From Convolutriloba macropyga (lineage: Eukaryota), in NCBI RefSeq assembly GCF_964194025.1, contig NC_134472.1:74648001-74712000 (forward strand): a DNA stretch of 64,000 bases, read 5' to 3'. Below, one piece after another: positions 38,170-61,370 of this stretch. The number at the start of each line of letters is the position of its first letter. Within the stretch, counting starts at the first letter, position 1. The notes beneath the pieces were generated by a model. That model did no database searches, was not told where the DNA came from, and saw only the letters and a program-made list of their open reading frames with translations. The translations under genes and the position numbers were made by a program.

Positions 38170-38222
38170 TACAATGCACCTGAAAATGGAAAATATCAGC
38201 ATTAGATCTTAGCAGTAGAGAA

Positions 38223-41200
38223 TATTCTTAAAAATAAAAAAAAGGCCGTGTACACCATCCGGCATCGATGGATGTAGGTCGAAAAATAGGGTATGATGAG
38301 TAGCACTTAGTAGCCGGATGCTGCACTCCAAGCTGTTCCCCTCCAGACAGTGTAAAGACGGCCCAGTCACAAAAATAAATAACAAGTGGAGAGGAAAGCA
38401 CCTATATATATATATATATATATAGCACACATAGGGAACTAGAATGGAAGGAATAAAATAAAAATGGACCATCAAGGAATAAGCAAATGAATAAAGATAA
38501 GCAGCCAAACACTCAGTGCAGCCTTCCCTCCTCCACGACGGCGCTAATCGAAGTCTCACTGAGAACACGAGGCTTGAGGGCACGACATCCCCTCAAGCAG
38601 AGAACACAGCTCCTCAGAAGTGCGAAGCTGATTTTCGTTCGGATGTAGCTTATAGTGTCGGCGTACGGCTCTCCGCGTTTTTCGCTGATCTTGGTTGCGA
38701 GTTGTTTCATAACGCGCGATGCTGATGGACCTGGACCACCCGAACAAGCAAAAACCAGTGCATTGAAGCTGCTGTGTTCGGTTTCGCGGATTCGCTCTTC
38801 GTACTTATTTCGCTTGATGCTCTCGTGATATTTGTATGCATCTTTTATGGTCTTAGGGCAGCTCTTCGCATGAGGGTTGAAAATCTTCACATCGAAGAAA
38901 GTGCGATTAAAGCGGGAGCCCCACAGACCGTTTGCCTTGATGTCCAGTCGAGCGTCATCATCAGTGGTGGTGGAATTACTCGAGAAAATTTCTCCATCGA
39001 GCGACTGAAGTTTTGGCTCTATCTGTACATCGTGGCAAACGTCATCCATCAGGTTTGCAAACACATCTCTAATTTCGTTGTGTCGTAGGTGCGTATAACC
39101 GCCTTTGGCGCAATGGAGGGCATGGGTGAGGCTGAATTCTTTCCCGCATGGGCATATGGCTGGCGTGTTCTTCGCTTCCCAGGTGTAGCGAAGTGCTATT
39201 CCATCACGGAACTCAGTCTTCGTGAGGTCAAAACCATGTTTTGACAACGGAAGCGCGTTAAGCCAGCTTGATGCTCCTTTCTCCGAGGCCAGCTGGATGG
39301 TATACTTCATTTCTGGTAGATTGTTTTCGATTCTGGATTTTTTCGAGATGAGTTCACGTTGATTGTCTGCTTTCTGTCTGAGACTGATCTTGGTTTGTTC
39401 TACTTCACATTGTTGAATATTATTGAATGACGCCAATGGTCTTGAGAGTTCAACTGATTGCTCAAGATTTTTGTGACGATCTTGTGGGAGGGCGATGTTA
39501 AGCCCACCCATTTTGAGAGGGAGAGAAAAAAGTTCTCTTTCCTCTTGGATTACTTCTTTGCCGACGATGTTCGGTATGACTCGGCCAAGCCGCTCCTCCA
39601 CCTTGTCCAGAACCCCCTCCATGGAAGGTGTAGTACGCGAAAGGAAGCTCAACTTCTGTTGAACCCCCTTCGTCAAACATGCATAGGCATTCTGGGAGAG
39701 GTGAGAGCAAATTGACCAAGTCTGTCTAAACTTTTTGTGTATTTATTTTCTGCATCTTTCAGGAAATTTTTACTGGCCTCAGAGCTTCCGATAACTGATC
39801 CCAGGACTCGAGCGCCCTGCGTGATTTCCACATTTGTGCCTGCAAACACAGTTGACGCTTGGCGCTCTCCTCCTGGCTTAATTATCAACTGACACTTCGG
39901 AGGATTGACAAGATATCCATACTAGGGACCGAGCTCAGTGAGCTTGTCGAAGAGTGCCCTGATATCTTCTAACTTACCGACGACGCTACTATCATCAGCA
40001 TACCATTTTTGGGTCAAAGAGTCATTATGAAGTCTTGTTATTAGGGGTAGGATTACGATTTCATACATTGCCATCGCAAGGGGATCGCCTTGTGTCGTAC
40101 CTTCCTGAGACAGTATGGTGGACTTACCGATGTAGAGATGAGACGGGTGGCTATAGAAATTCTGTAAGGCAACATGCAAAGATGGGCATAAGGCTTTCAC
40201 GTTCTCTAAAGCTGTTCGTCTATTGAGCACGTTAAAAGCGTTTTTGGCATCAATTAGAAGAATTGCTTCGTTTTCGGGATCATCAAAACTGTGGCGAAGC
40301 GAATGTATGGCATGTTCTATGCCACATTTCTGGCCCAGGCACAGTTGCATGTTTCCACCGAGGAATGTTAGATCTTGCCTGATGCAGTCGACGATTATGC
40401 GTCCACTGATGCGACGCATTACTTCACCAATACCAATATGTCTCACACCTGGACATTTATCCAGGGCCACTAGTCGACAACCATTGTATGCAATCAAATC
40501 ATCCGGTGCTATTATGGACGTGGCAAGCCTCTTAGCAAACTTGGCAACAAGCTTGCACAGGTTCGTGGATGTTCGCTCTGAATGCAGTTGGGCTCCAAGG
40601 GTTGACCTTCAGGATGTTTGTCGCGTAAAATCTCGAGGACCGGTCCACCGTCTATGAGATCGGTAGGTGCGAGCACGCCGCCTTTGTGCTCATCCGAAAG
40701 AACGCGAATAGCATTACTGATCTTACCACGAGACATGAAATCGTTGAACATCTTGAGGTCAGAGTGCTGCTGTTTGTTCCTTGAATTCATTCTCATTTGG
40801 ATTGCCTTCGCTTCACAGAACAGTTCTGAGAAGTTGCAGCTGTACCATGCTTGCAGTCTACGCTTGATGGTCTTATTATTCGATCCATCGTCCGTGTTCT
40901 TTGTTCGACTGAGGGTTAGGTGCGGAAGTATCATACAGAGGGTCAGAGATATATCGGATCTATCCGTGTTTACGGCAATCGGGGAGAGGACACTGTGAAG
41001 GGCTTCGGCGAACTGTTCCCCTGTCTTGTTCTTACCGAGCGTGAAGAACGAGGGCTTCCAAGTGACGACCTCGCGGTATATTTGGCGCACTGTTACCACG
41101 TGATGAGGCTGGAAGTGGTCCCAAAAATTATTCGATGCTGCGGCGACGGAATGTTCGGGGGCGTGCGATGTTGCAGGATCTATGAGTGCAGTGTCGGGAA

Positions 41201-42322
41201 CGATCAAAGCGTTGTGTGGTGCCGGCGTTGCGATTGCTGTTTCGGTGGCTGCGGTGATCTCAGAGCAGTTTTTGCAGCTGAAGTTTTCGGTCCAATCTTT
41301 CGCTGCGGCTAGACCACTGCATTTCACGTGCAAATATTTATGACATGTATGACACCAGACGCCTCCCCACGTAGGGGACCCTTGCAGAGTGGACAATGGG
41401 TTTGATCAGCCATCAAGCTGCGGGCTAGGAGTTGGGAAGGCTGCACTGAGGGGGACTAGATTAAGTTAATTACAGGAGAGTAGTAACAGCAACGATATTT
41501 AAAGTATTGAATGATGTTAAACAGAATAATAGTGAAAACATACAGAACAGGTTAGGTTGAAGAACATTTCTAAATGAGGGTGAAACAATAAACAACTTTA
41601 GGGCACAAGAATCAATATAATTATACAAAGCGTAGTTAAGGGCACTGATTTTCTTATTTATGAGGCGATTACAGCTGGTGGGTATAACTTTGGGAACAAT
41701 CAAATTATTTGGGCTAAATTTAACAATAATCAGCTGAATGAGGAATTTCCAATGCTCTAAGAAAGTTTCAATACTACTACGGTGATCATTGAAGCCGGCA
41801 ATTACTTCAACAGTGTTCAGCTTCTGGTCTGGGTATTTATTGATAACATCACAGAGATCTAGCAGTTTAGCACCTCGATAGTAGTGAACACAACCCTTTA
41901 CTTGACCCTCGTCTACATATTTGGTACGAGAAGTACCCAAGACCAAGTCCGAGCAGCTGGGGGGAAGAGGGTAGGCATCAAAACGTCCCATTCACAGAGT
42001 CTGCTAACATTCAAAACACAAAAAAAAATGCTCTGAAAATGAAATCAATTAGAATGCTACGACCTGATGTGATGAAGGAAGATGGTTGGCATCAAAACAT
42101 CCCATTCACGGAGCCTGCTAACATTCAAAAACACAAGAAATTGTTCTAAAAAAGAAATCTGTTAGAATGATACGACCTGATGTGATGAGTCGGACCTTGA
42201 CTCTAACGAACCATACCCGAACCTTGCCTCTAAAACCCTCCCAATGGAGGTCCCCAGTACAAGGATTTTGCCTTAACAAATCTATTTAATAAGTTTATCA
42301 CAACAATTAGGCTAATTGTTGT
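38223..42322 (-). mobile_element. Full-length, decayed RLE-type non-LTR retrotransposon (CRE-like): SGNH-like ORF1 (41991-41470), ORF2 PHD-RT-CCHC-RLE (41413-38513); 11-bp TSD
   Basis: TSD GCAGTAGAGAA at 38212-38222 and 42323-42333; empty site visible in the paralog at ~57823-57833. Motifs CPLC..WCHTC..HVKC..CKNC, DAKNAFN, QGDPL, WYADD, CPCG..HALHC..RHN, RLDIKANG..FFDVK. Frameshifts, a stop and an internal deletion near 40560. Confidence 0.92.
42282..42312 (-). other. Putative spliced-leader exon copy at the 5' end of the CRE-like element
   Basis: GCCTAATTGTTGTGATAAACTTATTAAATAG; 30/31 identical to 53501-53531. Confidence 0.7.
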
Positions 42323-42374
42323 GCAGTAGAGAAGAACGTAATTCGATGTAACAGAATAATCAGTTGACAATTCA

Positions 42375-42541
42375 AAGAAACTGAAGAAGAAACTCATTGA
42401 ATACATGTGGAGCTATTTGGAAAGGAACTGGAATGAGCAGAATCCTTGCACATGGACATTCATTTGTATCTGTGAAAACTGTCGTGCACATCCTAGAACC
42501 TAACAGCGGGAATAACATCCCGGTGGCATATCCACGAAGTC

Positions 42542-42594
<53 letters not shown>
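42375..42594 (+). mobile_element. Extremely 5'-truncated CR1/L2-type copy with (AAT)n tail
   Basis: Encodes KKLKKKLIEYMWSYLERNWNEQNPCTWTFICICENCRAHPRT*, the same C-terminal CxW...CxCxxC motif as the CR1 at 44520-44620; absent from the paralog near 57875. Confidence 0.8.
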
Positions 42595-42596
<2 letters not shown>

Positions 42597-42667
42597 TATA
42601 GCCCCTTTTCAAGGCAATGCTCAGAAAAAGCTTCGGTGAATCAGTGAAAAAGCTCCTAACATATTGT

Positions 42668-43106
42668 TTAAAAGCGCCAATTAACTTGAACTAGTAAAAA
42701 GCTTTCCGTCCTCAACAGCCTTCCGTCCTCAACAACAGCTTCAATTGAGCCATCATCAATTTCTCTCCGTCTTAGTGTCATAGGGCTTCGAATGCAGAGA
42801 ATGGAGCTACATAGGAAAGCGAAGCTCATTTTTGTTCTTAGATACGACATGTCAGCGTAGTTGTCCTTTTTCACGCAGAGAGCTTAGATATGCGCTGTTC
42901 CACAAGAGTATGCAGACAAGTAGACAAACGTTGATTTCGCAACATTCATAAATTTTGTTCATTTTTGTTATGACAGATTCGTGATTCTTGTAGTCTTTGC
43001 TACTGCTATCAGCGCAACCTTTCGCTAGCAGCTTGGAAACTTTTAATTGAAATGTTTCGTCAAACCCGGATTCCCACAGTCCGTTGGATTTGATGTCTAA
43101 TGCATC
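42668..43106 (-). mobile_element. Old RLE-domain remnant of a CRE-like element; second copy at 57950-58376
   Basis: ALDIKSNGLWESGF and SYLRTKMSFAFLCSSILCIRS...EDGRL, homologous to the C-terminus of the 38513-39676 ORF. Confidence 0.8.
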
Positions 43107-43271
43107 AAAAAATTATCGATCAAAAAAGGACTCTCCGCTAATGCTCATCACGTTCAAGACGAAAAAAGCTGTAACAATACTCCTTTTTCCATCTTAAAAA
43201 GATATATGTATGGCTAATCTTAAATAGATAAATGTATGGCTAATCTTCCACGATCTACCTAATTTAATTCC

Positions 43272-44686
43272 AAGCCCTATTAGTCTCTTATGTAGCGTCT
43301 CAAAAGTATTAGAAAAACTAATTTTCGACGAACTATATGAAATTGTCAAGACAAAGCTAGAAGAATCACAACATGGATTTAGAATGCATAGATCAGTAAT
43401 AACCCAGATGTTGCTTTTCCTAGACCTGTTGTATAATGAATTCGACGAAAAAGACAACGAAATTTTTGTACTTTACCTTGACTTCAAAAAAGCGTTCGAT
43501 ACAGTCCCTCACGATCTTCTGATTAACAAAGTGGAGAACCTGGAAGTAGGGGGAAATTTCTTAAAGATTGTAGCCAGTTACCTATCAAATAGAAAACAAT
43601 ACGTGAAAGTAAATGACTCAGAATCTGAAACTGTACCAGTAACCAGTGGTGTCCCCCAAGGATCTCTCCTAGGTCCCCTACTTTTCACAATATATATAAA
43701 CGATCTTCCACAACAAACATCAAAATGCTCTGCGTTTGGATACGCAGATGATTTCAAGCTTGTATCAACAAATCCAGCAAATATACAAAGTGACCTGGAA
43801 AAAATCAAAAAATGGTGCCATAACAACAATATGCAACTCAATGAAAGCAAATGCACATCCTGCCGATTAAAGTAAACGAAAAAAACTGGCACTCCTTTAT
43901 ACTTAACTCGAAAACTCTCTCAAATAAAAGTGAGCAAAAAGATCTAGGTATAATTATGGCTACTAAGTTATCATGGAAAGCGAATATAAAGAAACGTTGT
44001 AGCAAAGCCTGGAAAGCGTTTTATTTCCCAAAACGAAACATATCAAACCTTGCATCGCAAACAACAAAACTCAATGCATATGTCGGCTACGTTATACCAG
44101 TCATAAGTTATGCCTCACAAGCATGGTTCGCGAATAAGACCGAAAGCAAAGACATCGAGCGCATTCAAAGAAAAGCAACGTCGTGGATAATCAGTAACTG
44201 GGAAATTAGTTACAAGCAAAGACTGACCACACTGAAGTTGCTGCCATTGTCATATTACTTTGAATTGCATGATCTATTAATGCTCCTCTCACTGCTTAAA
44301 GGATCTTACAATATAAAAATACCCATTAAAACAAACAATAATGAAGGGTTGTTAAGCACACGTCAAAACGAGCTAATAACAATTAATAAAACAAGAACAA
44401 GGAAAGCTGATGAAAACTTCTGGAAAAGAACCAGTTATTAACTAAATATAATACGAAAAATAGGGAACGTCGATCTTGATCAAATTGATAAGAAATATTT
44501 AACAAAAATATACTGGAACTACTTCTTCAAAAGTTATTCAGAAGTCAACTTATGTTCCTGGGCTTTCAACTGCAGCTGTGGACATTGTAACCCGGTGCAG
44601 AAGCTCAGCTCAGTCGTTAAATGAAGGATGCAAACCCATGTGGAAAGACCCACAGAAGCCTAAACTCTCTCTCTCTCTCTCTCTCT
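43272..44686 (+). mobile_element. 5'-truncated CR1/L2-type LINE with (CT)n tail
   Basis: PISLL, QHGFR, YLDFKKAFDTV, SGVPQGSLLGP, YADDFKL, C-terminal CSW..CSCGHC; (CT)n at 44664-44686. Confidence 0.92.
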
Positions 44687-47600
44687 GTCAAATGTGGAGC
44701 CCGCACAAAGCTAGTCAAGGATGCTGACCAATCTGGGATCGGGTGTTCTTCATGTGACAAAAAGTTTCAAGGGGACTGTGTCTCGCTGTCCCTTAAAGAA
44801 GAACGCTGGCTGGGACGTAAATCAAACATTCAATGGATTTGCGATGTCTGTCTGGCTGATAACAACACCTGCGTGAATGCCCCAACTGAAGCTAAGTTAA
44901 ATTCTTTATTTGTTGAATTCCAATCTAAGTTGTCCTCTTCTATCTCTGAATTGGTACCTCAACTCATTAAAGATTCAATTCCTACTATGCACGATAATGT
45001 CAAAGAAGCAGTCACCAGCGCGCTTCCGTCTTACAGCGATATTGTTACTGGAAACCAGAAGACCGCGCATTCGAATGAACTTCAATTTGTGATAACAGGT
45101 TTAATTGAAACTGAATCCAAATACTTCAAACAAGTTGAGAAAGACTCGGCGGATGTTAGTGACTTATTTCAACATATGCGCCTCCAGGCTGGTGGAAAAA
45201 TCTTGAGTGTCCGGCGGCTTGGCAAGATTGCGAAACAACAAAACGATAATATTCCTTCTAGTCAAATCGTTGTTGTTCTATTCTTGTTACAACATCAAAT
45301 TCTAATTTTATGGAAAATTGTTTTGCCCGAAGTCTTTATTTACAGATCATAAACATCCGGTGTACATCAAAAAGTTCTCATCTTCTTCAGATCGTCAATT
45401 GGAAAAAGCCGTTTTGGCTAAACGTTACCATATGGTCACAGTTGAGGGAAAGGATAGACAAGACTTTCAGATCAAGAACTTAAAATTGTACTACAAAAAT
45501 TTGCTACCAATTGATATAGCAACCAATTGACTACACACTCATAAATGTGCTCTCATAAACTTTCAATCAATATGCTCTCTAGATAAACGCTACGAAATTT
45601 TGAAACTATTCGCGTCGAACTCTGTTTCTCACTGAAACTTGGTTAAATACGGACACCGTTAACTCTGAAGTATTTTTGGGTTCTTTCTTCAATATTGTTG
45701 CCAGATTAGATCGTAATCGTCGCCAGCATGGTGGCGTGCTGATTGCACAATCGTCTAACTCAAGCGTCAAAGTTTTTGATATTACAATTTCTGACTTCGA
45801 TTATGCTATTCCTTGCGCTGTATTATGTAAGAAACTCTCCTTCTTTGTGCTTATATACAACCCGCCAAAATCATCAAACTATTCAGTAGACATCTCTAAC
45901 TTATTGGCTTGTATTTAGTCCTACTATACTAAATTCGACTTGTTACTGGTTCAATTTGGTTTTGGTTGCGATTATGATGTTTATATAATAGGGGATTTCA
46001 ATTTCCCTGGTATTGATTGGGCAAACTATTGGTCATCCTTATATCACGAATGTCGATTCCTTGAAATGGTCATTGAAAAAGATCTGACTCAGTTCGTCGC
46101 TGGACGTTCACATAAAAGTATCAGCATCCTTGATCTTGTTTTTTCTAACGTTGCTAATCTATCAGTTACGGTAGCTAAGCAACTTTTCTCAAACTATTTT
46201 CCCATTTACTTCTACCTTAACTCCCCGGAGGCGCCATTATCTTTACGGAACGTTTATTCAAATGCTTCCTTCAATGCTCCTTTATTCAATTCTAATCTTC
46301 AACCTCTTTTTACGGTCACGTCGCAAGATAATTCTATTAATTTTACTTCTTCTGACGCTTGGTACAGCCTAATTTTTGACGCTTTCACTAATGCAATTAA
46401 ATTGAATTAAGCTGTCCGTCTTAAATCTCCATTGCTTTATTTATCACATACTATTCATCTCATTAATCAAAGAGAAAACACTTTTAAGCAATTAGGAAGT
46501 GATCTTTTTTTTTACCCGCCTTAAAACTGAGAGAACTCAACTTATCAATTTCAGATTCTATAGAATTAGATAATGAATTATTCATCAATCAGTTTGGTCT
46601 CTCTTCAATACGACAATGTTACAAGCTGATGAGAAGTTTTGGTTTCAACTCGTCATTTCCTCCTGTTATGTTTCATGGAAATGAATCCTATTTCAGCGAT
46701 TCAGAGAAAAACCTTGGGATTCAACAAATTCTTTGCTTCGGTCTTTCTAGACAAGAGTTCCTAACTTGTTCCAGATCAATTGAAAGAGTCTTCCATCAAA
46801 TTGATGAACCTTGATTTTTCTTTATCTGATGTTCTCCTCCTCTTGGAGTCGTGTGATGATTCTAGTGCCGCTGGTGCCGATGAGTTACCCTCATTCCTCC
46901 TTCACCAATGTGCGAAGATTCTGTGTACGCCAGTTTTTGAGCTTTTCTTCTGGATTGTCAAAACCCAATATTCGCCTGATCTTTGAAAAATAGCACACGT
47001 TACTCACTTACATAAATCTTGTCCTCATAATGATATTTCTAACTACTGTCCCACTAGTATCCTCCCTTAGTTTTCCTTGTTACTTGAAAGATTATTGTTC
47101 AATTTTATTTACCCGAAGATAAGGCATCAGATCAAACGTGAACAACATGGATTTAGAAAGTCACGTAGTACATTAAGTCAGATAATAATGTATCTTGATT
47201 CGTTTATTCAGCTCGTGATACCAATTCTCCTGCCATTTCTATCTACTTCGACGTAAGAAAAGCTTTTGACTCTGTGTCCCATCAAATACTTTTGTCTAAG
47301 CTTGTGAATTTTGGTTTCGACTCAGCTTTTCTAAACCTTTTTAAAGCTTATCTAACGAATCGTTCTCAGTATGTAAAAATTAACCAAAAGGTTTCTTCTC
47401 GTTTACCCGTTACTTCGGGAGTTCCGCAGGGCAGCGTGCTTGGTCCTTTGTTATTCATTATTTTGGTTAATGACATTGCTGATGATGTGACCAACAGTTG
47501 TTTTTATCGTTTTGCTGATGACCTGAAACTTTTCAGCACCTCATCGTTCTCCCTTGTGCAAGAGGACATCAATTCCTTATTTAATTGATGTAATTTAAAT

Positions 47601-48460
47601 GGTCTCCATTTCCACCCATCAAAAAACGTTAATTTTGGTGGCCATGATTCTGCTAAATTGTTTCTAGGGTCGGACTACTTACCTTTCAATAAACGAATTG
47701 AAGATTTGGGTTTTATTGTGTCTAGTACGCTATCCTGGAAAGCTCACCCAGATTCAAAGCTTCTAAAATGCAACAGAATTTTTAACTTCCTGAAGCGTAA
47801 TACCCCCTTTTCAGTTTCGGGTCACAGGAAAGTTTTGCTTTATAGATCCCTTATTCTGCCTATTTCATTATACGGTGCTCCTGTTTTGTCTCCGTCCTTA
47901 ACTATGCTAAACCAACTTGAAAGCTTCCAGTATAAAGTCCTTCGTTGGATAATACGCTGCTAATCAAATGTTTCAGGCTTAGAATCCCTTCAGTTACTTC
48001 CTGTGTGTTACAGCTTATTCAGAGATGACATTGTTTTCCTTTGGAAGCTTTACAACGGGGCCCCTGACGTACAAAGTAACCTTCATTTTACATCTTTGCC
48101 AACACGATCTTCCTCGAATGGACTGTTTCGCGTCCCTAGAGCACGCAAGGTCTCTTCAGAAGACAACTTTTTCATCCGAGCAACTCGAGCAAACAAGCTC
48201 TTCCGGTTAAAAAACCATTTCATTCGAAATGCCTTTAAAAACTCTGAAAAATTACCTCATCAATTACCTGAAATCCAGAACATCAAATTACTATGATATG
48301 AACAGTTCGTGTTCACATTTTGTCAAGTGTTATTGTACATTTTTTCGTGCATAAGTCATACATGTGTGTTTTCTTAAACATTATCTTAAAAGGAATTAAG
48401 CCTTTTAGTACTACTACTGTTCAAACACTTAAATTCCATAAAGAAATAAAGGAACAATGA
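44687..48460 (+). mobile_element. Near-full-length decayed CR1/L2-type LINE (PHD ORF1; APE-RT ORF2)
   Basis: GCSSCDKKFQGDC...WICDVC; TETWL, HGGVLI, GDFNFP, LDLVF; KAFDSV, SGVPQGSVLGP, FADDLKL; many stops and frameshifts. Confidence 0.92.
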
Positions 48461-48464
48461 CAAT

Positions 48465-51400
48465 AATTACAAACAAGTTAAAAAATGCATATAAGTTTGA
48501 GCTTATTTGCGTTTATGTAATCCAGGAAATGCTGTTTGACAAAACTGTTGAAGCCGGATTTAGACTCTTTTCGCTTTCTGTCGTAAGGTGATGTAGCTCA
48601 TGTTGTTCCTTGAGCAATCTTTTTCAGGTTGATCCAGCCACGTCTTGCGTTGACCCCCTGGAGATCGTTCAGCAGAACTACATTTTTCTGTCGGCTCCCA
48701 GGTGAAAGCTCGGAGCGCTAGACGATCGTCAATCATCCTCAGGACATGGCCAAACCATTTCAGCCTTTTGATCATGATCATTGCAGAAACTGTCGACATA
48801 CGTGATCTAGCCAGTACTTATTCATTTGTCACCCTCTCCAGGTATGAAAAACATAGTATCCTTCGCAGACAACTGGTGTGAAAGCTGTCAAGTTTCTGTT
48901 GCGTTGATTTATTCATGGTCCACGTTTCAGAGCTATATAAGACCACTGATAACACGAGAGCTCTCTATAACTTGCATTTGAGGGGAATACAAAGTTGTTT
49001 GCTCTTCCAAAGCTTCTGTAAGCTCGCGAATCGCTGTCTCCCTTCCGCCAGCTTGACATTGATTTCCTTTAGGTCACAATGTCGCAAGCTCGCGAAAGAA
49101 CCGAGATACTTGAAAGCTTCTACATTTTCGAACTCCACTCCATCTTGATCGTGGACATTGCAGGAGAAAATGCGAGATCTTCCAGCTTTTTCTCTGCCGC
49201 AGTATCGTGACTCGTGAATTCGTCGGCCTTTCACAGTCGCGAATTTCCTAGTGCACTTCTGACAAGTGACGCTTTTCTCTAGCCCAACAAACTTTGACGC
49301 GCTGTCTTTGACACTCTTCGAACTCTAAGACTTGCAGAATCTGGCTTCATGCACTTTGCAGCCTTTTGCAGTGTCGAAGCGACGTTTACAAACTGAACAT
49401 ACACAACTCTCGTCATCAGAGACAGGATATGATCTGTTTTTTGCCGTAGACAACAGATCAGCAACCACTGACCTCTCGTCGCTGCTAACTGTCACAAGCT
49501 CAGCCTCCGCTGAACTTTTCAATCTCAGTTTCTCACCAGCTAGTGTCTCGAACCAGCCCGCATTCTTCTTCTTAACCACCAGCACCTCCCTGCCAATGAG
49601 TAGTCGGAATTGGTTTTCGGCCTCAATGAGAGTCCCAAAACGGCCTTTGTGGTTTCCTGTAAGAACATCCACGTTCTTTTGAGCAATGGGTACACTGGCT
49701 CCGGGTTTTTTTTTGCATTTAACACCCATAATCTCTGTCCTCCCAACATTGATCATTTCGCCAACAGCCTCGGCCAAAGATTCAATTCTGTGTAGATTTG
49801 CTTGAACTTTGGAATCAGAGACGCCCAATAGGGTAAAATCATCGGCGAAGTCAAGATCAGCAAGACAACGTCCAATGTCCATTCTTCCTTGAACTGAATT
49901 AGCCAACACATAGTTTATCACAAGGCCAAAGAGAATAAGCCGACAATACATCACCCTGGCGAACACCAGTTTTTACGTCGAACATCTGGCCCTTCTCACC
50001 TTCTGCCTTGACGCAGCACTTGAAGCCTTCGTAACTGTTGCGGATGACAATCACAACTTTTTGTGGGAGCCCGTAATGTTTCATTATATTGTACATCATC
50101 TCGCGGTCCACCGAATCGAATGCAGCGCGGAAATCAATGAAACAAAAACTGACGTCCAATTGGAAGGCCATGCATTTCTCTAGTATTTGCCTCAACGCAA
50201 ACAATTGGTCAGTGCAGCCCCTGCTCTTTCGGAATCCGCATTGTTTTTCTCTTAGCACTTGATCAAGTGCACCTTTGCATCTATTCAGGATTATTGATGC
50301 AAACACTTTTCCAGGTACCAAGAGCAGTGAAATTCCGCGATTGTTCCCACACTCCGATCTTTTTCCTTTGTTTCTGTTTAGAGCGACAACTTCTGCTAAC
50401 TTCCAGTCTTGTGGAAGGTTTTCTTCAGTCCAGCACTTGTTGACAATGTCCCACAGCCATTCAGTGATTCCAATATGCGACTTTAGCATTTCGGCAGAAA
50501 TATCGTCTGGTCCACATGCTTTACCGTTTTTCAGTTTACGCACGGCATATAGAATTTCATCAAACCGAATTGGACCTAGGTCTATTTCAAGACTCTCGGG
50601 CGCTTCCACTATGCTCAATACAGAATTGCCGCTTGTCGTGGTTGGATTTAACAGATTCTTAAGGTGCTCGGTCCAACGTTCCAGCCTTTCTCCTTTTGTT
50701 TTCAGAGGCTCGCCTGTGGTTGAAACTAGTTGACTTATATGAGGACTCCACTTCCAGCATAACAGTTTTGACTCCCCGAACACTTCATTCAGGTCCCCTT
50801 TGTCTGAGTGATCTTGTATTGTTTCACCTTTGTCTTTCAGCCAATGTCTTTTGTCAGATCTTAACGCTTTTCGTACTACTTTGCAGCAACTAGAGAACAC
50901 TAGCAGCGCCTCCGCGCTACTATGCTTCCTCAACTGTAACTCGGCCCGTTTCCTAATCAACGCCAGGGTTTCAATTGTAATCCAGGGTTTGTGCAAACGC
51001 TTTTCGGGGATAAGTAGTTTTGTTGCCGCTGCATTAAGAACCGTTCGAAAATTTGCCCAAGATTGTTCTACGCCTTCATCAATATCGCTCTATCGTTTCA
51101 TTTCTGCGCAGAAAGCTTCACGCGTTACTTCATCGTGCAACTTTGCAGAGCAGACTTTCGGTTGACTGCGTTGCTTATGTGCCCCTACTTTGAACCGCAC
51201 TTCAGCAATGACCATTTAGTGATCGGTGAGAGTGATCTTTCCCCTCCTTTTCCTAACGTTGTGCAAACAACTCCTGTATCGAACCGAATAAGATATTATC
51301 TAACATCTTCTTTTGCATCTGTTGGTCAGGTGGGTTAAATGTACACCGGTGCACTAACCGGTGTCGAAACCAGGTTCCACCAATCAACAGGTCATGAGAG

Positions 51401-52167
51401 ACACAAAAGGACAACAATTCTTTTGAAATATCATTCTCCTTGCCCATTCCAAAGGAGCCTCGGAAAGGCACGTTGACATCAGATTGTCGACCAGGTTCCG
51501 CATTGAAGTCTCCGACGAGGCAGACTCTCTCCCTCTGTTTGAAACTGGATACCAAGCTGCTAAACTGATTCAAAAAATTGTCTTTCGCTAAGTCGTAAGC
51601 TTCATTTGTGGGCTCATAACACACAATCACAACAAGGTTAGCTCGTTTCTGAGCTGCAGACTTCACATACGCCACTCGCTCACTAACAGCAACTTGCTCA
51701 GTTATGCTACCGGCAAGTATTTTTGTCACTGCAATACCAACTCCAGATTGTCTCGCTTTTGCGGTCGATAGCCAGGAGTCAATGAGAAGGAGCTTGTGGT
51801 CGCCAAGATCTATTTCCTGATCATCCAATCTTGTTTCCTGCACTCCCAGAACGTCCAAATTGTACTTCTTCAGGTCCATTTTCAGGCTTTCTAGTGAACC
51901 TGATTGAGCCAGTGTCCTGACATTAAGGGTTAAAATTCTGGTGTTTGTATTCCACTGGAGATCCTTCGCACCCCTTAACCGGGACTCGGGGCCATTTTTG
52001 TTTGAACTCATTGCATTGGGTTTTCAGGCTAATATAAAACTAGTCGCGCCACCAACTAGAGGTCCCTTGCCTCGTTAGCTCGGTGGTACTATGCATCTGC
52101 CCTACGGGCAGCTGCTGCACCACTTACCCCAGGGGACACCGCGGGGAGGAGAGGTTGGATTTTGCCC
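48465..52167 (-). mobile_element. Full-length decayed RTE-clade LINE (single APE-RT ORF from 52011)
   Basis: LTLNVRTL, GVQETR, GDFNA; GKACGPDDISAEMLK, QCGFRKSRGC, FIDFRAAFDSV, GVRQGDV, DLDFADD, FKYLGS, WFGHVLR. The 3' boundary is approximate; the 5' end abuts a gap. Confidence 0.93.
52070..52167 (-). ncRNA. HDV-like self-cleaving ribozyme fold in the RTE 5' end
   Basis: Order P1 (..GGGC/GTCCCCT), P2 (CCTC/GAGG), P3-L3 (CC-TCCCCGC-GG), GG for P1.1, long P4 hairpin, J4/2 GCTAA. The first bases of P1 fall in the N gap. Confidence 0.65.
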
Positions 52168-53496
52168 NNNNNNNNNNNNNNNNNNNNNNNNNNNNNNNNN
52201 NNNNNNNNNNNNNNNNNNNNNNNNNNNNNNNNNNNNNNNNNNNNNNNNNNNNNNNNNNNNNNNNNNNNNNNNNNNNNNNNNNNNNNNNNNNNNNNNNNNN
52301 NNNNNNNNNNNNNNNNNNNNNNNNNNNNNNNNNNNNNNNNNNNNNNNNNNNNNNNNNNNNNNNNNNNNNNNNNNNNNNNNNNNNNNNNNNNNNNNNNNNN
52401 NNNNNNNNNNNNNNNNNNNNNNNNNNNNNNNNNNNNNNNNNNNNNNNNNNNNNNNNNNNNNNNNNNNNNNNNNNNNNNNNNNNNNNNNNNNNNNNNNNNN
52501 NNNNNNNNNNNNNNNNNNNNNNNNNNNNNNNNNNNNNNNNNNNAAAATTAATCAGTACGTCTTCCTATTTCTAAACTACAGAAACAAGGAACTTTTTGGG
52601 AAATCTAATCGGCATAAAGCATCAATGAACCCCAATGTTTTTAACCAGGTCAAAACAAAAATTATTTCCCGTTTTTCCTCAAAGCGTCAAACGTTAGAAA
52701 TTTTAAAAAAGACATGCATGGTGCTTCTTTCAGAAGTTTGCATCATTAAATCAGATATGGAAGAGTAAAACGAGAGAGCTTTCTTCAGTAGTATTTTAAC
52801 ACACGGAAACTTCATGAAAAACGGTCGATGAAAAATGGGGATCTACTGTATCCCGTGTTTTTATTTACTATGTATAAATAGCACGTGCGCCTCGGGGCGT
52901 AAAAGTTGTATGCCCACAAAACTTGGGGGGTTTAGAATGATCTAAAAATTGCATATAAATAAGACGTCCTGTTCGTTCACTAATTGCTATAAATGTCATT
53001 TAAGAACAATTGTGCTATCGGCAGTTTTGGTCACACCGTCCAGTTGGAACAATACAGCTCAATGAGAACTGCCTAAGGCAGTTCTGTAAGCCGAAAACTG
53101 GATAACGACAGTGCTTGAAAGCACTACCACTATCCTATCTTTCAGAACACAACAATAAAATCGGCCGGACAAAAAAGCGCAGACATACGAAAGTGCAACA
53201 CGAAGGAGACCAATACTTCAAATTTTGTCTCGCGGCAGATAAACATACCTTAGACCTATCATTATTTGAGTAAAATCAGTAAAATTGTTAAACAAAGTGA
53301 GAGCAGAAATATTACAACACAATTCAAGTTTTCCGTCTTAACAGAACTACAAAGAGCAGCATACCGGGATGAAAAGGCTTCGTCACATTAGGAGATCCTG
53401 CTTCAACTAAAATATTCTCCTGACACTCGGATGTTTGATATCCGAAAACATTTCTTGTCGTCCAGCTCTGTAATATACTGAACACAACATCCTGTT

Positions 53497-56400
53497 AGTA
53501 GCCTAATTGTTGTGATAATCTTATTAAATAGCTTTGCTTGCTGGGTAGCCCTTGTTTGAAAGAGGATTTTAGTGATCTGGCTAATGATAGAGTTGGCTAG
53601 CGTATTTTTCTGTCTCAGCAATATTCTTATTGAGCCGCACAACCAAATTGAGTTGCATCAGCTTTTTTAACGATTATATATTCTCAGCGACAATCTTATT
53701 TCTCGATTTTCGTTCTGAGTCACACCGGACAGCGGTTCGGTGAGTAAGGTCTGATTTAATAAGTGGCTCCTTTTACAGTTGTTAGGTGCTTGGGGCTTAC
53801 TTAGTAATCGTAGTAAAAATGCCTACTCGATCTCAGTTATCAAAGGAAGTAATGAAAAGAGAAATACCTTGCTCCAGTAAAGATTGACCTGCTGTTACAA
53901 AGGTGCTGTTACCAAGATTTTTGACATAAGTCAATCCTTCTGTTGTGGATTTTGCAGTGCGGTAAAAAAAACCAAGCCCAAAAGTTATGCCAACATCTTC
54001 GTCAATAACCTTAAAAAAGAGAATAAAGCCAGGTCCTGCATAGTTCAAAAAATTTAACAAGAACCGCTTCAACAAGACAGCAAGAGAACAAATGATTTTA
54101 TCTAAGGCTCCGTACCATCAAACGACAGCAATGACCTTGATCTTATTAAGCAAATTGCCGAAGAGATCGACGTTACCCTGAACAAAAGAGATTTTGAGCC
54201 GAAGCGTATAGGTTATGTTAACGATTTCACCTGTCGACAGCTCCTACTTGTTAGGTTTCTGTCCGACTTAAAAAAAAGAGTTTTTGAGGAAGTCTAAGAA
54301 CCTGAGATCCTCCAACAATTTTTCTCAGATTGATGTTGGTCCTGATTTAACAAAGTCAGACAGAGAGGCACAATTTCAAGTACGTCAAAAAAGAAGAACA
54401 CTTCAGAGCAAATACCCTGGGAAAATTTTTGTGATTAAGAGTGGACGAGTGGAGGAAAGAAATGACAAAAACTTTCCCAAACAGTCGAAAGAACAATTGT
54501 TAGTGTATTATTTTTCAACGTGCAGAGCATGCTCTCAATTGAGAAGCGTTTATCTTTATCAACGCTCTTCGGTCAGAAAATGCCAAGTGTTATAGAACTT
54601 GTTGAAACGTGGCTTGATTATTCTGTCACTGACTCCAGTTCTGCGGCTTGCCGTACTCCGTTATTGCAAGAGCCGTTGGAGGCGTAAAACAACACGGTGG
54701 TCCGCTGATAGCTTTCCACAACAATTTTTGAAACAACGCTGATATTCTAGACACTTAGGTAGAAAATTTCCACTTGAGCTGTCTGATAAGATTGCCATCA
54801 ACCTACCTCGCTGTATTACTTATGTACCTTCCTCCAAAAAGCTCTAATTTCTTTGTTTCTCCTTCATTTTTTCAATCCTTAGTTACTCGCTTTTTTCTCA
54901 AGTACTTGGAGCACTGCTCTACGGATAAGCTGGAGATTTAATTCTCGGTGACCTCAATTTTTCCAATATCAGCTGGGACTCTCCGATCGCTTCAAACTCT
55001 CATTATCAACGATTAATCGGTTGCCTTACACTAGATTACCTGCTTGATCAAATCGTTCGCATTCCTACACATAAACATAGTAAAATTCTCGACCTGTCTT
55101 TTGTGTCACAGCCAGAAGCATGGGAATGTGAAGTATTAGAAGCCAAATTGTCGGATCACTTTCCTCTTATTCTAAATTACGAAATAGATAACTTCTTCCG
55201 TTTTGAGTCCCAATCGGACTTTAGTCTATGCGGTAATGATTTCGAAGCTTCTCAACTCCTTGTTTGCTCTAGTTTTTGTGTCTGTTTGCTTTTAATTGAT
55301 TATCCGGCTTTTTGGCTAAGTAATATAAGAATCGCCCTCTCTGCAGGTTGTAAGAAAAAACGTAAACGAAGACAAATGCTGCCTTTTTTCTACAGCTCTA
55401 TAACAGTGCACTGCCTGAACATGCTAGAGTCGGCCAGGCGTCGTAGAGCATCGTTTTCAGCTCTATTGAAGCTTGAAACGGAGGTGTATGACTTCATTGA
55501 GCTGGATAAAGCCTGCTTCCTTGACTCTTGCAAACATTTTGCAATAAACGAGGCCAAGATTCTCAGGAGATTGATTGGACGGAACACCTTTCCCAAGGAA
55601 AAGTTTTGGAGAGATTGCCATGCATCTACTAATACAGAGAAAGCGAATCTGTTAAACAAAAATTTTCAATCAGTTATCATCGATTCAACTTGTTCAGCTG
55701 GCAACTTACCGCAAATGGCAAATCCTGTGGCAGAAGTTATATTTTCAGTGAACCAAATAACCAAGTTCCTCGAGATTGTGTCTTCTAGCACAAATATGAC
55801 TTGTGATGGTGTACCATCATTTGTTTGGAACAGCTGTCCCAGTACTCTGGCCGGATATGTATGCTCTCTCTTCTCATATATTAATAATACCAATGAATGG
55901 CCGAACTTTTGGAAGTGCGCATACGTTACTCCGATTTTTGAAAAGGTTCCAAAAGCGATGTAGAAAACTATAGACCGATCTCTATCCTGGCAGGATTTTC
56001 TTTTGTATTGGAAAAAATTATTTTTGATTACCTATATTGCGTTTTTCGCTCACAGCTGAGCGCTTGGCAGCACGGATTTTTAGTGGGAATGCAACCATCA
56101 ATTAAATTTTAGTATGCCTCCACGATATCTATGAGAATTTTGATAGTAATTCCGAGCAAATAAAAGTTTACCTTGACTTTTGATACTGTGAATCATAACA
56201 TATTACTTTGCAAATTGGCATACTTTGGACTAAACAAAAGTTTTTTAAAACTGATAAAGACTTATCGCACTAACAGAACTCAAAGAGTTCAGATCGATGG
56301 ATGTCTGTCTGACTGCGAGTCTATTTCAAGCGGTGTTTCAAAGGTAGTGTTCTTGGCCCTCTCCTCTTTTCAATCTATGTAGATGACATGCTGGCTTTGC

Positions 56401-57383
56401 CTTCTTCTTCAACTTGTTTTTTTACGTCGACGATACGAAGTTGACATGCCCGTCTGAAAATATCATTTTCAATTTGCAACATTTGCAACAAGATCTTGAG
56501 CGTCTCTCAGAGTGGTGCAGAGACAATAGCATGATGTTCAGTTCAAACAAATGCGTCTTTTTACATCTCTCAGAGAAGACAATTGGCAGTCTTTTTTTAT
56601 TGACGATTACCAGCTCCAGAGAGTTGATTCAATATCCGATCTTGGATTACAAGTATAAAAAACACTCAAATGGGAAGCCCACGTACGTGGTAAACTCATG
56701 AAAGCGCGACAGAATTTTAATTATCTCCGACACTCTGTGCCCTATTGCGTTCCTTCTAAATTAAAATTCAACCCGCGTGCGTGATGTTCTTGCTTCTCTA
56801 CGCTTCTCCAGCCTGGCATGCTGACGCTACTCATGTGCGACTCTTGGAGATTTTCTATTGGAAAAGGCTATGTTGGTGTTTTGGTTATAGTGAGTATAAA
56901 TCTATTTTGTGTCTCTCAGAGAATCTCCCTATTGCCTATCAACTTATTGATCGTGATTTGAAGTTCTTCATCAGCATTGTTTAAGGCAAAAGTTGTGTTC
57001 CCTTCAGTCAGTATTTCAGTCTTGAACGATCCGACAGATGTCTCCGCAGCGGTCAAGCAGTTCATCTCGTTGTCAATACATGAGCCAGGAAGCTGACCGC
57101 CAAGTCGTACATTAACCGCATTTAAACTGTTGTAAATTATTTTAATGATGTGAGTGATTTAGATTTACTCTATCCTCCAATAGGTTGCAAAAATCGCTTG
57201 CTAAAATTCTTTATTGATCCGCGAAACTGCAAATTTGAATGCAATCAAACCGGTACGTAGTAAATAAAGTGTCCATGTCCTATATGTGTATCTTACTATC
57301 CCTTCTTTTGTGCAGTTTTTTTTCTACTCAGCTTTCTGTACATATCTTAATTTGTTAATGCTAAAATTCCATCAGTTTGGTAA
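53497..57383 (+). mobile_element. Full-length decayed CR1/L2-type LINE inserted in the duplicate RARS2 exon; tail in the gap
   Basis: ORF1 from ~53819 (PDLTKSDRE); APE VETWL, GDLNF, SDHFP; RT ENYRPISIL, FDTVNH, YVDDTKL; C-terminal KCPCPIC. Confidence 0.9.
53501..53531 (+). other. Putative spliced-leader exon copy at the 5' end of the CR1 element
   Basis: GCCTAATTGTTGTGATAATCTTATTAAATAG begins 4 nt after host homology ends at 53496. Confidence 0.7.
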
Positions 57384-58376
57384 NNNNNNNNNNNNNNNNN
57401 NNNNNNNNNNNNNNNNNNNNNNNNNNNNNNNNNNNNNNNNNNNNNNNNNNNNNNNNNNNNNNNNNNNNNNNNNNNNNNNNNNNNNNNNNNNNNNNNNNNN
57501 NNNNNNNNNNNNNNNNNNNNNNNNNNNNNNNNNNNNNNNNNNNNNNNNNNNNNNNNNNNNNNNNNNNNNNNNNNNNNNNNNNNNNNNNNNNNNNNNNNNN
57601 NNNNNNNNNNNNNNNNNNNNNNNNNNNNNNNNNNNNNNNNNNNNNNNNNNNNNNNNNNNNNNNNNNAATTGGATCGATCCTTCTCTGAGACAATTTTAAC
57701 AGCACGTTTGTTTCCTTTGCAAAAAGCAAAAGTCCTGGCTTGAAAGCACCCAGGGATTGAGGCAACAGTTTTAGAAACCATTACAATACACTTGAAAATG
57801 GAAAATAGCAGCATTAGGTCTTAGAAGTAGAGAAGAACGTAATTCGATGTAACAGAAGCATCAGTTGACAGTTCAGATAAATAGCCGCTTTTCAAGGCAA
57901 TGCTCAGAAAAAGCGTAGGTGAAAAGTAAAAGTGCTCCTAAAATAGTGTTCAAAAGCGCCAATTAACTTGAACTAGCCAAAATAACAGCCTTCCGTCCTC
58001 AAAAACAGCTTCAATTGAGGCGTCTTCAATTTCTCGTCGTCTTAGTGTCATAGAGCCTCGAATGCAGAGGATGGAGCTAGATAAGAGAGCGATGCTCAAT
58101 TTCGTTCTTAGATACGACATGTCCATTTTCACGCAGAGAACTTAGATATGCGCTGTTCCACCAGAGCATGCAAAGACAAGTAAACAAACGTTAATTTCTC
58201 AACATTAATCAATTTTGTTCATTTTTAGCCTGACAGATTCCTGATTCTTGTAGTCTCTGCTACTGCTATCACCGCAACCTTTCGCTAGCAGCTTGGAAAG
58301 TTTAATTAAAAAGTTTTCTCAAATCCGGATTCCCAGTGTCCGTTGGCCTTGATTTCTAATGCATCATCATCAGTTG

Positions 58377-61370
58377 ATATGAAATTAAAAGCCAATCAAT
58401 CTAATTCTAAATATAAGATCGAACGTTTTCTCTATAACTAACATCGTCAGGAAATCAATTTTTTATGAGTGATTTCAACGAAAAAGGAAATATATCAACA
58501 ATATTACAAAGATCAAATTTTTGAGTTCATGCAAATTGATCTACTTCTTTAAATCGAAATTTCGAAAATCCTTGGTTTTCAACAATCAAAATATGTCGCT
58601 ATATTTTCTCCATTTCTGAAAAGTTGAGAGACTATTTTCCGACAGCAGCGTAATTTTTCAATTTTTTGCATACATTTTTCGCTAAAAATTTTTTGAACAA
58701 GCTGACTCACATAACAAACTAATAATTGAGGTTCAGCTGCCGCCCACTGTATTCGACGCACTTGTTTACCTTCGGATTACATTGCCCTGTTTGCTATGCC
58801 ACCACGGTGATCAATTTCTTAGTGTCGTGGCACTGGTTAATGATTCGCCAATTAAAAGTTTTTGACGAATTGCAGCGGTCGCTAACGTGCTGACCGACCG
58901 TTGAATCAAATTTTTGGGTCTCTGTCAATCTCGTGGTTACTTGACGTCAAGTCTCGACATACGTGGATTCACAATCTTTACATGAAAAATTATCAAAAAC
59001 CACGTGAGGTTTCAGATTTTGTATTGAAACTCGACTTAAGTGAAAGCAAGCAAGTTTTCAGTTTCCTATTTGTAGAAATAATATTTGACCGAGATGTTTT
59101 CTATAGATCTTCTTTAAATCGCACGCTTAAATTGCCTCGTGATTGCGTTCAAAAGGTGGGGATACCAGTTTCTGCCAATGGTATATTTGTTTTGGTGTTT
59201 GAGGTTTTTCAGTTCCCTACAACACGTGCTTCGAGAGCTTCGCTTACAGATTTCGCAATCCAACATTCAGGGTACTGGTTTTTCAACCATATATCTTAAT
59301 TTCTTATAAGTGCTACGTCAAAATTTTTTCAACTACTTGTGCAACGATAAACCTATGCACAGTGCCTTGCACTGTATTTCTCCTACGATGCAATGGGGCA
59401 AAACTACAAAAATTTAAATTCTTTAGAGGTATCAGTAGGCTTTCGGAACCATTTGCCTACAAATATATATTAATATCAAGAAAAGCCAGTTTGTCGTTTA
59501 CATTTAGATTTCGTAACGTAAATTGAAGATTTTTGAGCAATGTGTTAACGTTTTCGAGCAAGTGTTCGCTTGTCGATTTTGTTGGTACACACAATATCGT
59601 CAATATCTTGCGCTAAAAAACCTTCTCATTTACTTGAGATCTGTTTTTTTTGGTAATTTATTGCAGTGACTATAGCACCATACAAAATCCTCCAATACTT
59701 TGTATTCGTCATTGCTTTTTCTGTCACTTTGCATAAAACCATTTTAGCGAATCGTTCACATTATACTCTTGTACAATTGCAAACTAAATTTCTTGAACAA
59801 ACTAGGCATATCTCACTGAGATCTTTCTCCAAGCCCGGATCACGAATACAACTTTGGTTTTTAGGTTGCTCTTTGATCAATTTCATCGAAATCGTTGTCA
59901 AGATGACCAGTAAAGATGCGCCCACTGCTATTCCGTCAACTTGGCAGCACCATCTATTGTTACAATTGAAATGTTCATTTGTAACAACCAATTTGACCAG
60001 AGGTTTTTATGTTGATCGGGAGACTGGTCACTTGATTAAAGGAATCTTAGAGGTACTTCTATCGCTTCCAAAAGAGTCACATTTGTGTCGAAACTTTTCA
60101 CGTCTAACGAGACTATCTGTTCGTTGTCATCAAGCACAAATAGCTCAAGTTCTTTACGTGCATCAAGAGTGGATGTTTCAAAATTTGCTCCGGGTGACTT
60201 CTCAAAAAGAGGCGTGAGAAATTTGTTTAAGTTGTGGTAGCTACTCCCAGGAATCGATAGAATTCGTCTCAGTGGCGTGTCTATTTTAAAAGAAATTGCT
60301 AAACATTTTAAACGCAGGATGAGTTCCTGTTGTTTGGAATCTGCGGTACATTCGTTCAAATCCTGTTTCCTCATTTCTACCGAGGTGCTTTTTTTAGCTT
60401 TTACAATTTTATTATCGTTCTCAGTTTCAATTTTTTAAAATTGCCGACAATAAAGTACCACGAGGAGTTTCTATTGCTTTTCCTTCTTCATTACGCAATA
60501 ACCACTCCCTTTGTCAAACTGCACAGCCAATGGTTTGTTCTCCTTGATGTTTTATCTACCTTGAGAAGGACGCGGTCAATGGGTGTCTCTCTCACGTTTT
60601 TGGAATACCATTTGGTCGCACACTCGATTTTGCAAAGTTTTCATCAAAAGTTCCATTTTTGCGTATTAATTCGACAGGTGCATTTACATCCAGCAGAAAA
60701 TGGATCTCATTGAATTTGCCGTGGACTGGATGTTTTGGGCCATAAGAGAGCATTTCTTTAACAAAAACATGCAATTTGACATCATCGAGTGTTCTTATTG
60801 CAAAGTTGTTTGTCGCACGAAACGGTTTATCTTATCAAATTTTTCTCCAGCTTCAAAAGCGTTTTAGGATTTTGTTCTATCAAAAGGGATTGATAATTGT
60901 TGTTTATACTAAAAGTAATTGGTAACAACCATTGGTAAAAACAATTGGTCTCAGCGTTTTCTCTAGCATTTTTGGGCTCTTCAATTAACAATTTTAGATG
61001 AAACTTATGCACCGCTTGCTCAGAAAGAAACATTCGTTTTTGCAACTCAAAACTTGAGAAAATTGGGAATCAAATCATTTTTCAAACAGCGTTCCAGAAA
61101 AAATATCCTCAATTTTGCTTTCACGCGTTTTTCAAAATGTTTCGTGTGTTTTGAGTACGCCTTTCATTTTTCATGTTTTCGTAGCGCAAGTCTCATCCAA
61201 TCGACCGGCTTTATTTGAGCAGACAGTTGCATCTTGCACAGGAAGTCCACCAGAACTACGGACAACACCGTTCTTAAGTAACCGCTTGGCTTCTTTAGCA
61301 TGACGCTTTTGTCTGGCTTTTTGCTGTTTCCTACCTACTTTCCGTCTACCTCTACTTTTGCTCAATAACC
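58377..61370 (-). mobile_element. Decayed Penelope-like element, copy 1 (RT + GIY-YIG)
   Basis: PLRRILSIPGSSYHNL, VSLDVKS, QVDGIAVGASL, DIDDI, RKPTDT, and relict VV..FSCKDCESTYV..T.R.V.TRL.E GIY-YIG motif near 58925-59010. Confidence 0.88.

Follow-up and report, generated by a model that had tools for sequence, protein, structure and literature searches.

How a complete and translatable 5' end is restored in each generation is a central question in the biology of long interspersed nuclear elements (LINEs), to which internal promoters and 5' self-cleaving ribozymes are the known answers, and a group of retrotransposons with a restriction-like endonuclease (RLE), comprising SLACS, CZAR and CRE1/2 of trypanosomatids and NeSL-1 of nematodes, is specific to the genes of the spliced leader (SL). 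The relict SLs of dinoflagellates are said to have been described originally by Slamovits and Keeling in 2008. They are carried by dinoflagellate retrogenes and go back to mRNA recycling (PMC12014239, PMC5585692, PMC8045281). In Schistosoma mansoni, six genome-encoded leaders were found fused to transposable elements (TEs), and trans-spliced and retro-transcribed elements were suggested (Boroni et al. 2018, PMC5832876), while in Hydra about 30% of the TE Iso-Seq reads carry an SL (Genome Biol 2025, PMC12220107). Additionally, 5' ribozymes resembling that of hepatitis delta virus (HDV) have been described for R2, RTE and L1Tc (PMC3185411, PMC4035085). The present analysis concerns a stretch of 64,000 nt from Convolutriloba macropyga (contig NC_134472.1, positions 74,648,001 to 74,712,000 of the forward strand, assembly GCF_964194025.1), hereafter the window, in which two unrelated LINEs, the RLE-type element E1 and the apurinic/apyrimidinic endonuclease (APE)-type element E2, start with the same 31-nt leader. 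To judge from these sequences, it is highly probable that the LINE RNAs were SL trans-spliced and reverse transcribed to the 5' end, and that the leader was integrated with them.

A pattern search for the 31-mer, GCCTAATTGTTGTGATAA(A/T)CTTATTAAATAG, gave exactly two matches in the window, one at the 5' end of each element, and 100 dinucleotide-preserving shuffles of the window gave none. The two copies are identical at 30 of 31 positions, both terminate in AG, and the bases that follow are AT in E1 and CT in E2 (leader/body junction CTTTGCTTGCTGGG) and not GT; the 30/31 identity, the final AG and the absence of a following GT had been described in an initial annotation of the window, made from its letters. 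The same annotation had seen no other homology between the two elements, and this agrees with a sensitive blastn comparison of the whole elements, in which the single significant match covered 38 nt (36/38 identical). This match consists of the leader with TA on its 5' side and xTTTG on its 3' side, which is the very extension for which the limits of the leader had been called approximate; no longer module shared by E1 and E2 was found.

A full-text literature search for the leader sequence leads to the genome paper of Symsagittifera roscoffensis (PMC9911081) and to its preprint; in the excerpts of that paper, the S. roscoffensis SL, reconstructed from unmapped 5' ends of transcripts, has the same sequence plus a trailing A. 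Judged by this match and by the presence of SL RNA genes, the 31-mer is the SL exon of this acoel, as the initial annotation had supposed. Genome-wide, at least 2,503 copies of the leader were counted at two or fewer mismatches, and a control pattern had no matches in the genome-wide search. At 1,394 loci, the leader continues with GTAAGTATTAAC (two or fewer mismatches), which gives about 1,400 SL RNA gene copies with a GTAAGT donor, an Sm-like site and hairpins, i.e., the combination of leader, GT and Sm site that had been anticipated for such genes. Most of them form tandem arrays on C9, at 23.14-23.78 Mb and at about 62 Mb, whose units repeat every 1.06-1.8 kb. In the predicted fold of the 106-nt SL transcript (minimum free energy -34.4 kcal/mol, z -4.8), the intron pairs with the 3' half of the exon, the splice donor lies in stem-loop I, and a strong hairpin is present on the 3' side, with the Sm-like stretch UUUAUUUGA (AUUUGA) single-stranded between the hairpins; no SL family of Rfam matched this transcript. 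The array loci are bona fide SL RNA genes. Given the empty shuffles, the set of genomic copies against none for the control pattern, and the identity to a leader derived from transcripts, the probability of a chance match, or of a small repeat shared by recombination, for which only the shortness of the motif speaks, is negligible.

The SL genes of the C9 arrays have two kinds of upstream sequence, and the array has larger interruptions. 5S rRNA genes occur within the array units, two of them in one 3-kb unit, and at L040 (C9:23137727-23140753) and its neighbours they lie on the opposite strand, interleaved with the SL RNA genes. Outside the C9 arrays, two loci carry a solitary leader plus intron copy, L034 (C2:54.17 Mb) and L039 (C8:54.18 Mb), and may be either dispersed SL genes or retro-copied unspliced SL RNA. 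Immediately before the retro-copied leader, A occupies position -1 in 31 and T position -2 in 26 of 36 copies, and the true start of the SL RNA may therefore lie 2-3 nt upstream of the published GCC.

The T variant of the leader is encoded by about 13 SL RNA genes on C9 and is found in about seven dispersed copies, including E2. T-variant leaders are rare among both the SL genes and the dispersed copies, which is expected if dispersed copies sample the SL RNA pool. Since C9 genes encode this variant, T at 53519 is most simply regarded as a copied minor SL RNA; in all probability it reflects natural variation among the SL genes and did not arise by mutation afterwards. The A/T difference had been offered as a means of telling the genomic leader from a freshly trans-spliced one; as a probable SL-gene variant, it is a poorer discriminator than was assumed.

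Evidence on the origin of the two leaders in the window comes from a direct segmental duplication (84-96% identical), which includes the 5' end of the arginyl-tRNA synthetase (ArgRS) gene. Each of the duplicated blocks, A and B (Table 1), later received a different LINE, so each serves as the empty site of the other. The part of block A at 37280-38222, which is 96% identical to 52750-53496, holds the E2 empty site at 38036/38055, and the part of block B at 57667-57877, which is 93% identical to 38055-38222, holds the E1 empty site at about 57800-57845, with one copy of the target site duplication (TSD). Both empty sites are without leader sequence; therefore, the leader came with the inserts. 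On the E2 side, homology to block A stops at 53496 and the leader begins 4 nt later, and on the E1 side 10 nt, ACAACAATTA, separate TSD and leader, in keeping with the 4-10 nt given in the initial annotation for the distance from the 5' junction. That annotation had also taken both 5' junctions to be fixed by TSDs and by empty sites; both hold for E1, and for E2 the empty site was verified and the TSD was not confirmed, its 3' end falling within an N gap. So, a leader at the edge of a TSD-flanked insert with a leader-free empty site, the mark of an SL-tagged retrocopy, is found in full at E1 and for the 5' edge at E2. The 10 nt at E1 are the reverse complement of leader nt 4-13 and, on this sequence relationship, are a snap-back product. 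A comparable role for CACAACA upstream of E2 was considered and ruled out, as this motif recurs in the empty paralogue and so is part of the host flank.

Table 1 Features of the window (position 1 is the first letter of the stretch) and variants of the leader/body junction in four element families
Feature	Position	Strand	Basis or remark
Leader, A variant	42282-42312 (42312->42282)	minus	5' end of E1; identical to the published SL and to the exon of the SL RNA genes
Leader, T variant (T at 53519)	53501-53531	plus	5' end of E2
E1, RLE-type non-long terminal repeat retrotransposon, 4.1 kb	38223-42322	minus	Pfam RVT_1; CCHC/RHN/D/DVK motifs
E1 open reading frame 1 (ORF1)	41473-41991	minus	
E1 PHD-like zinc finger region	40515-41405	minus	
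E1 reverse transcriptase (RT)	39925-40608	minus	RVT_1, 5e-08
E1 C-terminal endonuclease region	38516-39742, motifs 39154-38879	minus	by inspection
E1 TSD, 5' copy, TTCTCTACTGC, 11 bp	42323-42333	minus	single copy in the block B paralogue, ~57800-57845
E1 TSD, 3' copy, TTCTCTACTGC	38212-38222	minus	
10 extra nt, ACAACAATTA, between E1 TSD and leader	42313-42322	minus	
ArgRS gene exons	33183-38208	minus	tRNA-synt_1d, 7e-40; DALR_1, 2e-10
E2, decayed APE-type LINE	53497-57383	plus	Pfam; family copies L062-L070
AGTA, 4 additional nt separating the paralogous flank from the leader	53497-53500	plus	alignment with the empty site 38036/38055
E2 APE remnant	from 54929	plus	Exo_endo_phos_2, 9e-06
E2 RT pieces	55942-56109, 56387-56698	plus	RVT_1
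N gap	57384-57666		hides the E2 3' end and any E2 TSD
N gap	52168-52543		outside both elements; 958 nt left of the E2 leader; between the third LINE and block B
Third LINE	49325-52011	minus	APE 51253-52011, RT 49899-50996; abuts the gap 52168-52543
Block A	37109-38222, E1, 42323-43107		
Block B	52546-53496, E2, 57667-58366		begins right after the gap ending at 52543
Junction variant, E2 family			junction after GTGTTTCAG
Junction variant, nine-member cluster			junction after TTGTTTCAG
Junction variant, MSQRGM family			junction after TTTCAG or TATTAG
Junction variant, E1/L025			junction after AAAG

The class of the two elements bears directly on how the leader could have been acquired. E1 is, by the layout of its motifs, an RLE-type element, because it combines a CCHC and a PD-(D/E)XK-like motif arrangement as in R2-type restriction-like endonucleases with the absence of an APE domain. 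Inspection of its C-terminus revealed CPCGKEFSLTHALHC, RHNEIRD, RLDIKANG and FFDVKIF, where CPC..H..HC, RHN, D and DVK resemble the R2 endonuclease, and a Pfam scan of the ORFs upstream of the RT gave no APE match. E2, as had been stated, is of the APE type, with Exo_endo_phos_2 followed by pieces of RVT_1; its coding region has many frame breaks and is heavily decayed, the APE domain being N-terminal to the RT. The initial annotation had called E1 RLE-type and CRE-like. The first term holds, and the insertion specific to SL genes that distinguishes CRE, SLACS and NeSL does not apply to this copy, which entered a target other than an SL gene, is flanked by an 11-bp TSD and lies upstream of the ArgRS gene. 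The known preference of CRE/NeSL-group RLE elements for SL genes is what would favour co-transcription, in which master copies sit inside SL RNA genes, use the SL promoter and derive the leader from the target. This is nevertheless very improbable, since E1 and E2 occupy non-SL targets whose empty sites have no leader, so that the location within SL RNA genes which the initial annotation had named as an alternative does not apply to them; the leader is present in full, down to the exact position of the splice donor; the same leader also heads families of the APE type, which lack site specificity; the several AG-obeying junctions per family described below would require many precise insertions; and the SL gene units that were inspected are intact.

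Under trans-splicing, the transcripts of unrelated LINEs such as the RLE-type E1 and the APE-type E2 would receive the leader in the same way as about 30% of the host mRNAs do, and target-primed integration would copy this RNA to its very 5' end, so that each new DNA copy would open with the 31 nt of the leader. The retrotransposition-competent RNA of each family would then normally be SL-capped. The case for this reading rests on the identity of the motif with the SL, the leader-free empty sites, the end of the leader at the exon boundary, junctions that follow an AG rule, and successive leader additions; the SL genes, the empty sites, the exon-boundary end and the AG junctions likewise bear out the suggestion of the initial annotation that the element RNAs were trans-spliced and then fully reverse-transcribed.

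Subtraction of the SL RNA gene copies from the 2,503 occurrences leaves about 1,100 dispersed leaders, the other genomic copies whose tabulation had been proposed, and at least 25 of the 30 loci sampled on C1 head LINE-like elements. These belong to many families with no DNA-level alignment between them, and the sequence after the leader varies from locus to locus. Clustering and domain scans identified LINE ORF1-like proteins after the leader and APE domains about 1 kb further on at L009, L013, L014, L019, L028, L030 and L038, and PHD-type ORF1s and E1-like RLE elements are headed by dispersed leaders in the same sample. In several APE families only 6-15 nt lie between the leader and the ATG of ORF1. 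Directly after the leader, TTTCAG is found at 270 dispersed loci (e.g., L013, L014, L018, L020 and L024), that is, at about a quarter of the dispersed leaders, and may represent either a tandem acceptor or a 5' module that is conserved; at loci of this type, ORF1 frequently begins 0-2 nt after TTTCAG. Trans-splicing with full-length reverse transcription, the recurrence of which follows from the junction variants and tandem leaders described below, has left its products at about a thousand places in the genome. One sampled locus, L027 (C1:73052167-73055197), has a complete leader with a sulfatase ORF 884 nt on (Pfam Sulfatase, 2e-32), and is a candidate SL-tagged host retrocopy.

The family of E1 is young, with at least 165 candidate copies at 90-99% identity. 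According to pattern counts, 36 copies keep the 5'-terminal 33-mer, and 34 of these 36 have the leader fused at the identical junction. Contig depth at E1, which is DNA-like and has no bearing on transcription, is about 90x in the flanks and in the thousands over the element, with the highest value in the leader bin, and follows the usual LINE gradient of copies from 3' to 5'; E1 was found in three samples, and no contig joins its two flanks. With an ORF1 of the E1 family, an exact-protein look-up retrieved nothing beyond a further DNA assembly of the L025 locus. For the E2 family, three independent copies have 0 leader mismatches and one copy has 1, against a body divergence of 5-11%; the joint probability of this pattern is about 0.015 in a crude star model. 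As a test for "refreshing" of the leader, this result is suggestive only and was not relied on.

Several points weigh against trans-splicing followed by full reverse transcription. The insert edge of E2 is proven at the 5' side only, as its 3' end lies in an N gap; the trans-splicing of E1 and E2 themselves is inferred from DNA; the dispersed leaders were sampled as the first 30 loci on C1, which is a small sample from one chromosome; and the uniform junction of the young E1 family would equally result from one capture that was then inherited. This last point leads to the alternative in which each family acquired the leader a single time, or on rare occasions, and simply inherited it thereafter, an internal promoter initiating transcription at leader nt 1 and the SL exon perhaps acting as an initiator element, a function that Hannon and colleagues reportedly described in 1990 for the SL exon of a nematode SL RNA gene. 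The uniform junction in 34 of the 36 E1 copies agrees with it, as does the leader of this young family being no better conserved than the adjoining body. We nevertheless regard it as unlikely, because the 6-15 nt from leader to ORF1 ATG in many APE-type families leave scant room for a promoter, families that cannot be aligned at the DNA level all bear a leader identical to the present SL genes, AG-acceptor junction variants exist within single subfamilies, and tandem A/T leaders together with 5' transductions show transcription starting upstream of the integrated leader.

The junction variants were found in four families (Table 1), and the junction of the short form always lies right after an AG (CAG, TAG or AAG) of the long form. 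Short and long forms occur inside single subfamilies; therefore, the junction events recur. In addition, two loci display 5' transductions: at L025, a foreign stretch of 156 nt separates the leader from the E1 body, and at L001 a new leader is followed by some 30 nt of flank and then by an older leader truncated at its 5' end. Tandem leaders joined as AAATAG directly followed by CCTAATTG were found at six loci, including the E2-family copy L063, and further relict or tandem leaders at L001 and L032, while none was found within the window. To judge by its letters, this tandem junction uses the (T)AG that arises where the integrated leader begins. The two leaders at C7:12430638 differ, the upstream one being of the A variant and the downstream one of the T variant, so this tandem did not arise by local duplication and records two successive independent SL additions. 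As far as DNA can tell, the junction variants, transductions and tandems together show that leader-bearing copies were transcribed from upstream, re-trans-spliced and re-retro-copied.

A further set of junctions resembles that of E1 in having inverted leader pieces at the 5' junction, namely L038 (22 nt), L014 and L022, and snap-back pieces of this kind fit a leader that was the actual 5' end of the template RNA. Such partial pieces, direct or inverted, upstream of complete leaders (L001, L014, L022, L038 and E1) are also what would be said for template switching, in which the LINE RT would leave the end of the element RNA and continue on SL RNA or on other mRNAs that bear the SL, in the manner of U6-L1 chimeras. 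As a source of the leaders themselves, template switching is extremely improbable, because the SL intron or an mRNA body would be copied along, whereas the leaders stop at the exon AG and abut the element at AG acceptors; it may be the source of the partial or inverted pieces upstream of some copies. The 5' flanks of L019, L021, L023, L025, L008 and L038 contain short tandem flank duplications or hairpin-like inverted repeats.

Beyond the trans-splicing of LINE RNAs, it can be proposed, tentatively and at somewhat less than an even chance, that several LINE clades gave up their own promoters and that the DNA copy of the leader acts as a portable 3' splice-site module. A host read-through transcript, e.g., from the ArgRS unit around E1, would be trans-spliced at the AAATAG of the old leader, as the initial annotation had conjectured, and a capped, exactly full-length element RNA would be regenerated in each cycle, so that SL trans-splicing would be obligatory in the life cycle of the element. 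Within the leader, CTAAT resembles a branch point and precedes the terminal AG by 25 nt, and an A/T-rich tract is present as well. The proposal is consistent with this CTAAT, with TTTCAG adjoining the leader at 270 loci and with the sense orientation of E1 relative to the ArgRS gene, and it receives indirect support from the A/T tandem, the 5' transductions and the 5' untranslated regions (UTRs) of 6-15 nt after the leader. Note that re-splicing exactly at the AG of an integrated leader leaves no DNA signature.

As for the surroundings of the two elements, E1 had been described as co-oriented with, and just upstream of, a synthetase gene, and ArgRS domains were indeed found directly downstream of it. 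The endonuclease region of E1 matched no Pfam or PDB model and a PDB sequence search with it was empty; in the ESM Atlas, its C-terminus fell into unnamed clusters only, with no clade placement. A PDB sequence search with the APE region of E2 likewise gave no match. The 5' UTR of E2 has an internal deletion of about 60 nt relative to its family copies. In L063, L064 and L066-L070 of this family, the leader is followed by CTTTG and then by CTATTTAATAAGTT, the perfect reverse complement of leader nt 18-31; CTATTTAATAAGTT and the leader form a hairpin mimicking stem I of the SL RNA, which was mostly lost in the E2 of the window through this deletion. No leader was seen at the third LINE, situated between E1 and E2, the 5' end of which heads toward the N gap at 52168; this gap touches neither of the two leaders, and therefore the finding is unaffected by it. 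ORFs at 43384-46410 on the plus strand, with a weak PHD-finger match at 44621-45352, may belong to another LINE-like element adjoining E1, and a direct repeat of about 2.6 kb with 91% identity occupies 58340-60941 and 61370-63993.

About a thousand leader-headed LINE copies from unrelated clades, many of which have almost no other 5' UTR, suggest a third solution to the regeneration of the 5' end, namely, borrowed host trans-splicing. The leader also serves as an inherent molecular tag by which full-length retrotransposition events, and retrogenes, can be recognized in an early-branching bilaterian. Genome-encoded leaders would also confound read-based counts of trans-spliced genes; the 30.2% of S. 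roscoffensis genes given as trans-spliced in the excerpts of the genome paper rests on leader-containing reads, and those excerpts make no mention of dispersed leaders or LINEs (PMC9911081).

Compared with the systems described so far, E1 shares with SLACS, CZAR, CRE and NeSL-1 the presence of spliced-leader sequence at the 5' side of an RLE-type element. In those elements, however, the leader comes from the target gene, together with the SL promoter, whereas here the targets are without a leader, the whole exon lies inside the insert, and APE-type LINEs are headed by it too. By analogy, the relict leaders of dinoflagellates are the closest known mechanism. There, reverse transcription of a trans-spliced RNA takes in the SL, which thereby becomes a lasting 5' terminus of the DNA copy, and when such a copy is transcribed again, a new SL can be spliced to an AG in or at the start of the old leader. 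The outcome is tandem, slightly shortened leaders, to which the six AAATAG tandem loci would correspond. Dinoflagellate retrocopies carry host genes, whereas in this bilaterian animal the great majority of the sampled leaders stand before LINEs that are autonomous and belong to several clades, and entire families have the leader as a constant 5' terminus. The Schistosoma case was a passing remark on six loci, with assembly error as an alternative, in contrast to the roughly 1,100 dispersed leaders, the TSD and empty-site proof, the family-wide junctions and the AG-rule variants found here. As in Hydra, TE RNAs would use the host trans-splicing machinery; the excerpts of the Hydra report present this as an RNA-level observation, with no genomic fixation of the leader or role in the life cycle reported in them (PMC12220107), whereas here the leader is fixed in DNA. 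The 5' ribozymes offer a functional analogy, since in both cases a defined 5' end of the element would be released from a host co-transcript and an own promoter would be unneeded; ribozymes do so by self-cleavage, leaving an uncapped 5' OH, whereas here, provided that the model is right, the 5' end would be a capped leader supplied by the spliceosome. What is new in the present case is the scale, the proof by TSD and empty sites, the involvement of both RLE- and APE-type LINEs, the 5' UTRs consisting of the leader only, and the signatures of recycling in a bilaterian.

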